In this document: positions 38,155-40,113 of the stretch, in pieces
How positions within the stretch are numbered: position 1 is the first letter of the stretch
Layout of the letters: each line of letters opens with the position of its first letter
NCBI RefSeq assembly: GCF_963853765.1
Contig: NC_088855.1
Location: 42,098,001 to 42,162,000, forward strand
Length of the DNA: 64,000 bases
Reading direction: 5' to 3'
Origin: Magallana gigas
Lineage: Eukaryota
Program-made: the position numbers and the translations under genes
The notes under the pieces: generated by a model
Told to the model about the DNA's origin: nothing
Seen by the model: the letters and a program-made list of their open reading frames with translations, nothing else
Database searches by the model: none

Positions 38155-40113
38155 TTATCGTCTTTTTGGGACCAAATTTGCCTTCTTCGTGTCATCGTCT
38201 TTTGAATCATCTATTTCCCGTGAATCATCTTGATAATCTTCCTCTGATTCGCTGTCAATTTCATCGGTTTCCATAGAAACTAGGCGTTTTTCTTTCTTGT
38301 CTTCTTTGGAGGATTTACTTTCAATAGAGTCTTCGTACTCTTCGGAATCTTTGTATTCCTCCGAGTCTGCGTATTTGTGTTCTGTTGAATATTCGTATTC
38401 TTCAGAGTCTTTATATTCGTGCTCTGTTGAATCCTCGTATTCGTGCTCTGAATCCTCGTATTCGTGCTCTGTTGAATCCTCGTATTCCTGCTCTGTTGAA
38501 TCCTCGTATCCGTGCTCTGTTGAATCTTCGTATTCTTCTGAATCTTCGTATTCGTGTTCCAGAGATCTCTCTGTAGAACTGGACTTTCCTCCTTTAGTGA
38601 ATGGATGGCCTCTAGCTTCCTTTGATTCATCTTCGTGTTCGTGTGAATCGCTCTCAAATTCACGAGAGTCTCCTTCAATTTCAGATTCATGTGAGTTTTC
38701 TTTCACTTCGACTGAGTGAGAGTTCTTTTCCACCTCGTGTGAGTTTTGTCCTATTTCATGTGACTGCATTTCATCTTCATATGAGTTGTCTTTCGCTTCA
38801 TGTGAATTTTCTTCTTTTTCATGTGAATCCACTTCAGCTTCATGTGAGTTCCATTCCACTTCATGTGAGTTTTCTCCTATTTCATGTGAATCAATGTCAT
38901 GCGAATTTCCTTCATCTTCGTGAGATGTTTCTCCCCTTTCTCGTGAATCCACCTCCCCGGACCCCGGTAAATGGACTCTGTGTTCATTACTTCCATGTGA
39001 ATCTATGTCTTCGTGCATTTCGCTGTCGTCATAGAAGCTATCATCATATTCTTCGTATGATTCATGAGAATCAATTTGATTGGAGGATTTTTTGAATTCT
39101 GCTGAGGCGTCATCAGATTCATCTGACCCTACGTACGCCGTGGTTGCATGGATCTTCTGGTGCCTGGTATTTTGTTGTCTCTTGGGCTTCATGGGATGTT
39201 GCTTGATTGGAGTGTGTTGGGGTTCTGCGGAATACATTTGCCATTAGTTTTTGAGAAAATGTTGATAGTAGGTTTATGTCAAAAAAATGAAAAATAGAGA
39301 AAGTTATACTCACGAAAGTGTCTCCTTTCAAACACCCAGGCATCCGTGGTTTGGAACTCCCTGAAGCTTACGGTACCATCGCCTACGGGGAAAGAGAAAT
39401 CAGTAACTAGGTTATAATCATTCTTGATGAAACTTCTATTCACATTTCTTTATTATTCTGTTGTTTGAGTAAACGTTGAATGTTTATCCATTTCAGACGA
39501 TGAAGCATTACTATTTACCATTTTTGTCAGCGGCGCGGAATGCAACTTTTACGTGAAGATCACGTGGGCTGTGTCCTAAGGTTCGCGCAAACTCATTGAG
39601 AGAAATCTGGTTGTCTTCATTGACGTCGTAGAACGACAGAGTTCTAGGTAGCGGTGTGATGTGAACGTTTACATCTGTATTTGTCTGTAAAATATTAATT
39701 ATATCATATATATATACTAATGCAAAATCAAACATGGAGGTGTTCTATAGGTTTTCTTGCATAGACACCAAAATGAAACCAGATATTGACAACAAAATTT
39801 AGATATCTAGAGTATGTACGAAATGTAGTTAAGACAAAATTCTGAAGAATTGAGAAATTACCAGCATTTTCAGCGACTGTTCCCCTGTGTATGCGTTGGT
39901 ACAAACATGTCTGAGAATAAATCCACAGGTAAAATCGGAATCAAATCCGGTATATCTACGGCACACTCTCGGAGTCACCACGTGGCAGTGTCCAGAAATC
40001 AGTTCTCTCAGAGACATCTTTAAATCCCATTTCGAAGCTGATGCCACAAGAATTTGTAACAGAATAGTTAAAGACAATTTCAGTAGTTTTGGGAGCATGG
40101 TTTGAGGCTTCAA
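38155..40113 (-). CDS. Secreted EF-hand protein with a four-Cys N-terminal region and a long acidic Glu/Asp/Ser/His repeat tail (518 aa); candidate biomineralisation matrix protein
   Basis: Exons 40113-39862, 39684-39519, 39382-39314 and 39224-38155 are in phase. Signal peptide MLPKLLKLSLTILLQILVASA. EF loops DVNEDNQISLNE and DKNGDGTVSFRE, the second split across an intron. Repeats are ~7-aa [ND]SHExxx and ~8-aa EYEDSTEH. Confidence 0.9.

Follow-up and report, generated by a model that had tools for sequence, protein, structure and literature searches.

A predicted secreted EF-hand protein with a disordered, S-x-E-rich acidic tail in the oyster Magallana gigas: a candidate shell phosphoprotein

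Oyster shells have long been known to hold abundant phosphoproteins, few of which have been tied to genes, and the classical ones have an Asp/Ser/Gly composition. In SPARC and SPARCL1, an extracellular EF-hand pair is coupled to an acidic region, and the SCPP genes, which descend from SPARCL1, are multi-exon genes with all introns in phase 0. HRC and the granins carry acidic repeats with interspersed His, bind Ca2+ with low affinity, possess dibasic sites and are substrates of Fam20C, for which S-x-E is the established consensus. Among molluscs, EFCB1 has been identified in shell matrix from a limpet, Lottia gigantea. Here, we describe a four-exon gene on the minus strand of a 64,000-nucleotide (nt) stretch of the Magallana (Crassostrea) gigas genome (NC_088855.1, C3:42,098,001-42,162,000; hereafter the window, to whose positions coordinates refer unless another chromosome is named), the last exon of which had been the subject of an earlier prediction (hereafter the original prediction). 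The best explanation of this exon 4 is that it encodes the C-terminal two thirds of a secreted, mollusc-specific EF-hand protein. We give an even chance to the reading that this protein is a disordered polyanion, phosphorylated by a Fam20C-type kinase and bearing a Ca2+-binding EF-hand head, that acts on the calcium carbonate of the shell.

The vertebrate systems resemble the oyster protein in part. For zebrafish Starmaker and the SCPPs (osteopontin, DSPP, caseins) the likeness is functional, namely secreted, disordered, acidic, S-x-E-rich proteins that control mineral growth. The domain order of SPARC is opposite to that of the oyster protein, which also lacks a follistatin-like domain, and in contrast to SCPP genes the oyster tail lies in one large exon and the intron phases are 0, 1, 1. 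HRC and granins differ in being luminal or granule proteins of vertebrates without EF-hands. Searches with the tail against 5.8 billion proteins, the M. gigas genome and the ESM Atlas returned only the gene itself and close orthologues; among proteins of 195-621 amino acids (aa), with word-based selection of candidates, only its own cluster was found at E<=1e-3, and the ESM Atlas held no look-alikes. Homology of the tail to Starmaker, DSPP, HRC or granins was rejected at the sequence level, the searches having found its own orthologues only. On this evidence, the likeness to SCPPs, Starmaker and SPARC is one of convergence and not of membership, and the automatic name "protein starmaker" that the gene product carries in RefSeq is best read as reflecting composition.

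Secreted acidic proteins of bivalve larval shells also bear comparison. Zhao et al. 2018 (PMC6231486) reported CGI_10012241, which carries an EF-hand_5 domain, as the most acidic C. gigas larval shell protein, with an isoelectric point (pI) of 4.3, and the same paper lists the Pinctada fucata larval shell protein pfu_aug2.0_3796.1_22455, which has two EF-hands, 12.2% Asp, 18.5% Glu and a pI of 4.4. The composition of the Pinctada protein is close to that of the oyster protein described here (9.9% Asp, 16.2% Glu, pI 4.6). The original prediction had regarded the fusion of an acidic tail to an EF-hand pair as an architecture it did not recognise. That view no longer holds: the same module with an acidic tail occurs in a second M. 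gigas gene, in Saccostrea and in Pecten, and the larval shells of C. gigas and Pinctada are reported to contain acidic EF-hand proteins.

Gene structure, transcript and N-terminal module

The coding part of exon 4 (38155..39224, minus strand) encodes a basic linker, an acidic tail with two repeat zones and the stop codon (38155-38157); it is enclosed by the minus-strand open reading frame (ORF) 38155..39237, in which the splice acceptor falls at 39225/39224. Further upstream lie exon 1 (39862..40098; 79 codons, phase 0), which holds the start codon, a putative signal peptide and a twin Cx7C arrangement and is followed by a GT donor; exon 2 (39519..39684), which encodes the family-specific motif H-I-T-P-L-P, the whole of EF-hand loop 1 and the opening four residues of loop 2; and exon 3 (39314..39382), which encodes the remainder of loop 2 and its exiting helix (residues 136-157). 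Joined, the four exons form a 1542-nt reading frame of 513 codons, and the borders of the upstream exons are canonical GT..AG. The entire acidic region is contained in the single 1070-nt last exon. The predicted product is 100% identical to RefSeq XP_011436261.3, which was earlier named "aspartic and glutamic acid-rich protein".

Transcript contigs of ~1250 nt from three runs of three studies join the exons exactly at 39224|39314, 39381|39518 and 39684|39862, and the ends of the skipped segments read CT..AC, that is, GT..AG on the minus strand. Because contig depth is zero in the introns and flanks, the contigs represent transcript and not genomic sequence. The mRNA exists, and its four exons are spliced as predicted. 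The original prediction had held that its case would fall if the last exon were not spliced to the EF-hand exons; because the contigs join them, and in frame, this objection is removed. The contigs begin at 40106-40112, within a promoter-proximal region and short 5' untranslated region (UTR; 40099..40153, minus strand) that includes a TATA-like element (TATATAAATATAT, ~40141-40153); as contigs do not define transcript ends, the transcription start is only approximate. The 3' UTR can be followed as far as the contigs extend (38108..38154, minus strand), to 38108 in run X5 and to 38148 in run X2. One raw-read RNA run (X19), sampled at ~1%, gave no reads on the gene, a sampling too thin to judge expression. 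ORFs on the plus strand over the repeats were set aside as mirror artefacts, every transcript joint having minus-strand polarity.

The N-terminal module begins with a putative signal peptide (residues 1-22), read from a basic n-region, a Leu/Ile-rich core and a predicted cut at ASA|SK. It continues with four Cys (C38, C46, C58 and C66; residues 38-66, 39901-39987, minus strand) in a twin Cx7C arrangement and with the invariant motif H-I-T-P-L-P, which stands before two EF-hand loops (residues 99-111 and 132-144). Both loops fit PROSITE PS00018 (D-x-N-x-D...E, with ligands at positions 1, 3, 5 and 12) and are, by this canonical pattern, predicted to bind Ca2+. In the full-length protein, Pfam models matched residues 97-146 above their cut-offs, with EF-hand_5 as the best match (38.8 bits, cut-off 25.9), followed by EF-hand_1 (37.5, cut-off 25.4) and the EF-hand_7 pair (34.3, cut-off 30), and with EF-hand_6 also above cut-off; the full-length protein is required for this result, single exons giving sub-threshold EF-hand scores only. 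An intron splits EF loop 2 after D-K-N-G. The AlphaFold model of the module, built from an 11-sequence alignment, is poor, with a predicted local distance difference test score (pLDDT) of 55, and the β-strands that it places in the Cys region are not trusted. We note that oysters have a twin Cx7C spacing of the Cys, against a twin Cx3Cx3C in chiton and abalone (P0123 and P0140 in our alignment), a pattern typical of disulfide-stapled helical hairpins; AlphaFold is unreliable in this region (pLDDT ~50).

The acidic tail and its S-x-E bias

The tail comprises 356 residues, among them 77 Glu, 54 Ser, 41 Asp, 29 His (8%) and 18 Tyr, has a pI of 4.4 and sets 118 Asp and Glu against 37 Lys and Arg, plus the 29 His. 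Charge-hydropathy analysis classes it as disordered, and its AlphaFold model has a mean pLDDT of 43 and no secondary structure; by these predictions, it is an intrinsically disordered polyanion. Zone 1 (38626..38907, minus strand; residues 264-357) consists of 13 units of the form [ND]-S-H-E-x-x-x, scored at the protein level as [NDQ]S[HYR]E plus ~3 residues, with a His every 7 residues across most of the zone. Using Tandem Repeats Finder, we detected in zone 1 a 21-nt (7-aa) period at 38686-38889 (9.4 copies, 64% matches) and an older 63-nt higher-order unit (79% matches), and in zone 2 a 24-nt (8-aa) period at 38414-38535 (5.2 copies, 89% matches). At the protein level, zone 2 (38317..38550, minus strand; residues 383-460) consists of 11 units of Y-E-D-S-(T)-E-H-E, each of 6-8 residues. 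The two-zone repeat and the regular spacing of His in zone 1, both as originally described, are thus borne out at the level of DNA and protein units. Zone 2 varies in copy number between individuals: run X2 carries an additional 24 nt (one unit) after 38413, and runs X5 and X7 carry an additional 3 nt after 38448, an extra codon that restores the Thr lacking in one unit. Every indel observed in the tail among the transcript contigs is in frame. The sister species M. angulata has about two zone-2 units fewer, and within the M. gigas genome the tail is unique.

S-x-E occurs at 37 of the 54 tail Ser, compared with 11.7±2.8 (maximum 22) in 5000 composition-preserving shuffles. The enrichment is not confined to the repeats: outside both zones, 14 of 26 Ser lie in S-x-E versus 3.3±1.6 in the shuffles, and 0 of 5000 shuffles reach 14. 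At Ser+2, Glu reaches a frequency of 0.69 (background 0.22), and no other offset exceeds 0.39; Asp or Asn occupies Ser-1 at a frequency of 0.56, and S-x-x-[DE] is, if anything, depleted. In the orthologue from Saccostrea echinata, the tail has S-x-E at 36 of 55 Ser (11.2±2.8 in shuffles), Glu at a frequency of 0.65 at Ser+2 and, as in Magallana, 11 S-H-E triplets. The bias has thus been held although the repeats of the Saccostrea tail are organised differently and the tail is only 40% identical, and nothing else in the sequence argues as strongly for selection on [DN]-S-x-E as this position-specific bias kept in a second genus. The original claim of a tail rich in S-x-E is therefore upheld as a feature that is beyond chance and specific in position.

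Which kinase might act on these sites is suggested by two loci of the M. gigas genome with Fam20C-domain exons (PF06702) above the Pfam cut-off, at 48.93 Mb of chromosome 7 (G000:C7:48932682-48934400, minus strand) and at 18.12 Mb of chromosome 2 (G000:C2:18119276-18122014, plus strand), each of which encodes a candidate Golgi kinase for S-x-E. In Pinctada, knock-down of fam20C disturbs nacre, and fam20C has been implicated in shell formation of the pearl oyster (PMC5824888); in Lottia, about a third of the shell phosphosites fit S-x-E-type motifs (PMC4094399). We infer that many of the S-x-E serines are phosphorylated by a Fam20C-type kinase. In addition, 17 of the 18 tail Tyr, mostly in E-Y-E-D, have acidic residues within 5 positions and indeed Asp or Glu within ±2, the exception being Y188 in the basic linker; these acidic contexts, as the original prediction had noted, mark putative sulfation sites. 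Because only 3 of the 18 Tyr columns are conserved in Saccostrea, we regard zone 2 as a young, Magallana-specific elaboration.

The tail is preceded by K-P-K-R (residues 170-173; 39178..39189, minus strand), a convertase-like site of the form [KR]-x-[KR]-R between the EF-hand module and the tail, which reads KPKR in M. gigas and M. angulata and KVKR in S. echinata. A second dibasic site, K-E-K-R (residues 468-471; 38284..38295, minus strand), is not conserved: M. angulata has EENH at this place, and Saccostrea has no counterpart. The two sites had been taken to flank the tail, which could then be released at both ends. Both are present, and KPKR does precede the tail, but KEKR is not its end, as it is followed by a stretch of 42 more residues that is itself acidic and that closes with PKRR. 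Because KEKR is lost in M. angulata and Saccostrea, a release of the tail by two cuts finds no support; a convertase that parts it from the module at the conserved K-x-K-R is plausible.

Relatives of the module and the origin of the tails

To place the protein, we relied on an exhaustive phmmer search with residues 20-160 of the M. gigas protein as the query. Matches to the whole module comprised the S. echinata orthologue (503 aa), Saccostrea cucullata (473 aa) and Pecten maximus (519 aa) and, without a tail, the chiton Liolophura (160 aa) and four Haliotis species (204-213 aa); the chiton protein P0123 matched in a single stretch over query positions 11-130 (E 1.2e-9) and the Haliotis protein P0140 over 14-125 (E 3.5e-9). 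The family alignment has 13 invariant columns and supports homology, spanning the Cys region, the HITPLP-type motif and both EF-hands, to members named EFCB1-like. These mollusc EFCB1-like proteins share with the oyster protein a predicted secreted state, a Cys-containing N-terminus, the motif H-[ILV]-[TM]-[PA]-[LIM]-P and one EF-hand pair. They differ in their length of 160-224 aa without a long acidic tail, in six Cys in a Cx3Cx3C pattern as opposed to the twin Cx7C of the oyster, and in a furin-like site before the EF pair that the oyster protein lacks. Judging from the alignment, the protein belongs by descent with the mollusc EFCB1-like secreted EF-hand proteins, of which it is an uncharacterised variant. 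An EFCBP of Pinctada, reportedly described by Huang in 2007, may be a further relative. SMP5 of Haliotis (PMC10741955) was dropped as a candidate relative, as it represents a different, 134-aa family with other accessions.

The M. gigas genome contains one paralogue, on chromosome 2 (G000:C2:20853553-20856105, plus strand), with the same module and an intron at the same position and in the same phase in EF loop 2. Its tail of ~340 aa is rich in Asp, Ser and Asn, and the pI of the model is 4.3; the model loses its frame at the last intron and served only for the module and for tail composition. The paralogue, S. cucullata XP_062584903.1 and P. maximus XP_033728346.1 follow the same plan as the protein described here, that is, the module and a disordered acidic tail of ~320-360 aa. 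They differ in that Asp, Ser and Asn predominate in these tails, which contain 3-5% Glu and little or no His (0-3.6% in the paralogue and the scallop protein), show no preference for Glu at Ser+2 and are followed by a Gly/Asp/Val/Ile-rich segment common to the three proteins. Thus, two kinds of tail exist among pteriomorph bivalves, and an acidic tail is kept in every pteriomorph member found. The original prediction had proposed, as a check, that paralogues with the EF-hand module but without the tail be sought; relatives without it were found in chiton and abalone, while the M. gigas paralogue is itself tailed. In the module tree, the Magallana and Saccostrea proteins with a Glu/Ser/His/Tyr tail form a clade (support 99/99), the relation of which to the Asp/Ser-tailed clade is not resolved. 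Between the S. echinata orthologue and M. gigas, the module is 89% identical and the tail 40%.

The family also differs in where it might be processed. In all members not belonging to the Magallana/Saccostrea 'starmaker' clade, a furin-like [RK]-x-[RK]-R separates the Cys region from the EF-hands (RVRR in S. cucullata, KRSKR in Pecten, KKKR in chiton and RGKR in Haliotis; at residue 72 in P0009, 71 in P0038, 67 in the chiton P0123 and 87 in the Haliotis P0140). This suggests that in these members the Cys-rich piece may be cut off as a separate peptide or propeptide. The 'starmaker' clade has lost this site, and its K-x-K-R lies on the other side of the EF pair, after it.

Possible functions of the protein

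Our working hypothesis is that the protein acts in shell mineralisation. A Fam20C-type kinase in the Golgi would phosphorylate many of the 37 S-x-E serines, and the protein would then be secreted as a highly charged phospho-polyanion, a low-affinity, high-capacity binder of Ca2+ that also adsorbs onto calcium carbonate. Nucleation or growth of the shell, perhaps that of the larva, would thereby be tuned. The EF-hand pair would let the protein fold or dock in a high-affinity, Ca2+-dependent manner, pH as well as Zn or Cu would alter the charge through the periodic His (pKa near 6-6.5), and the conserved K-x-K-R may allow a convertase to part the module from the tail. The Asp/Ser-rich tails of the paralogue and of the scallop protein are of the kind typical of acidic shell proteins and lend the link to the shell support by composition. 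The shell-matrix protein EFCB1 as first-ranked Swiss-Prot fold match and the acidic EF-hand proteins of C. gigas and P. fucata larval shells also speak for the link.

Several points weigh against this hypothesis. The shuffle controls ignore repeat ancestry, a concern that is mostly answered because the non-repeat segments and a second genus show the same bias. Either of the two Fam20 loci may be Fam20B-like and not Fam20C-like, and the Glu/His/Tyr composition of the protein is unlike the Asp/Ser/Gly of the classical oyster shell phosphoproteins. When the poor model of the module was compared with 550,129 Swiss-Prot models using Foldseek, EFCB1 of Lottia gigantea (B3A0Q5) came first, yet the match is weak (E 4.4e-3, TM-score 0.38, 30% identity over 77 residues, model pLDDT 55). 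No tissue, stage or proteomic datum could be linked to the gene; the accession XP_011436261.3 was not found in the searchable literature, and in the literature on 'Starmaker' and 'aspartic and glutamic acid-rich' proteins nothing relevant to the gene was found. Conservation of the motif in invertebrates, and thus the use of S-x-E by mollusc Fam20 kinases, is not established (PMC4094399). Finally, CGI_10012241, which may be this gene, its paralogue or another gene, is a lead only: in the searched literature it is named solely in PMC6231486, neighbouring CGI numbers appear in no paper, and no CGI-named protein model was found in the protein searches.

We also considered that the protein might stay within the secretory pathway as a luminal protein akin to granins or HRC, serving as a low-affinity, high-capacity Ca2+ buffer or as an aggregation and sorting factor; the periodic His would then drive pH- and Ca/Zn-dependent condensation in acidic granules, and the dibasic sites would yield peptides. 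Chromogranins, secretogranins, nucleobindin and HRC, several of which are Fam20C substrates, are the analogues. An acidic, Glu-rich and disordered tail with Tyr in sulfation-like contexts, several dibasic sites and regularly spaced His would suit such a role, as would the K-x-K-R conserved after the EF-hand module and, reminiscent of pro-proteins, the [RK]-x-[RK]-R that in relatives separates the Cys region from the EF pair. However, no retention signal for the endoplasmic reticulum or the Golgi is present, the C-terminus reading ...VPKRR, the tail is without sequence similarity to any other protein in the searches, the downstream dibasic site is not conserved, and the relatives of the family point toward shell matrix. 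We regard this explanation as unlikely.

Oysters accumulate Zn2+ and Cu2+ heavily, and an unlikely explanation is that the protein is a metal carrier of the haemolymph or extrapallial fluid, in which the His/Glu array, with or without phosphoserine, binds mainly Zn2+ or Cu2+ for transport, storage or detoxification. The 29 His of the tail, Glu-flanked and at 7-residue spacing in zone 1, the S-H-E triplet repeated 11 times in both Magallana and Saccostrea, and the conservation of 47% of the His columns, as high as for Ser and Glu, are consistent with this. However, what is specific in position is Glu at Ser+2 and not a His-x-His or His-x3-His motif. Because the tails of the paralogue and the scallop protein have almost no His, His-based metal binding is not a trait of the family. 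That only the EF-hand module is functional, the tail being a low-complexity appendage that evolves fast and has no specific role, and its S-x-E a by-product of the amplification of a few DNA units, is very improbable, for although the repeats are young at the DNA level and vary in copy number within and between species, the tail is far less conserved between oyster genera than the module and relatives without a tail exist, the S-x-E enrichment persists outside the repeats and in Saccostrea with its differently organised units, all indels seen are in frame and no pteriomorph member found has given up its acidic tail.

We also speculate, as a long shot, on a more novel reading. The oyster-specific [DN]-S-H-E heptad array might be a new type of switchable mineral or metal ligand, in which Fam20C-type phosphorylation of Ser beside a titratable His and a Glu would produce repeated triads of phosphoserine, His and Glu; depending on how acidic the calcifying compartment is, these would flip between binding of Ca2+ and of Zn2+/Cu2+, and in their self-condensation. 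The EF-hand module, severed at the conserved K-x-K-R, would act as an intramolecular Ca2+-sensing chaperone that keeps the polyanion soluble in the Ca2+-rich secretory pathway until its release. If true, such an array would be a convergent and mechanistically distinct counterpart of the vertebrate SPARCL1-to-SCPP lineage.

With a clean, expressed, single-copy gene, the locus offers a candidate for an oyster shell phosphoprotein, in which the S-x-E signature has outlasted the turnover of the repeats around it, throughout the divergence of Magallana and Saccostrea. More broadly, one secreted EF-hand module is found with no tail (chiton, abalone, limpet), with an Asp/Ser tail (scallop, oysters) and with a Glu/Ser/His/Tyr tail (one oyster paralogue), a series suited to studying the recruitment and specialisation of acidic disordered tails in biomineralisation, and the question of whether the vertebrate motif is used by Fam20 kinases of invertebrates. 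Were the link to CGI_10012241 true, the gene would bear on the formation of the larval shell, the stage at which sensitivity to ocean acidification is greatest.

As to the neighbourhood, a convergent gene on the plus strand (34859-37207) has astacin-like exons (e.g. 34927-35121, with ...SIMHYS...) and a C-terminal ShKT-like exon with six Cys (37037-37207), and ends ~0.9 kb from the 3' end of the gene described here. No astacin lies within 5 kb of the chromosome-2 paralogue, where a seven-transmembrane-like ORF is found instead, and adjacency alone gives no support for a pairing of the gene with an astacin that processes its product. Upstream on the same strand (44882-47884, minus) lie a large ORF (44882-45928) and a CARD-like ORF (47555-47884).

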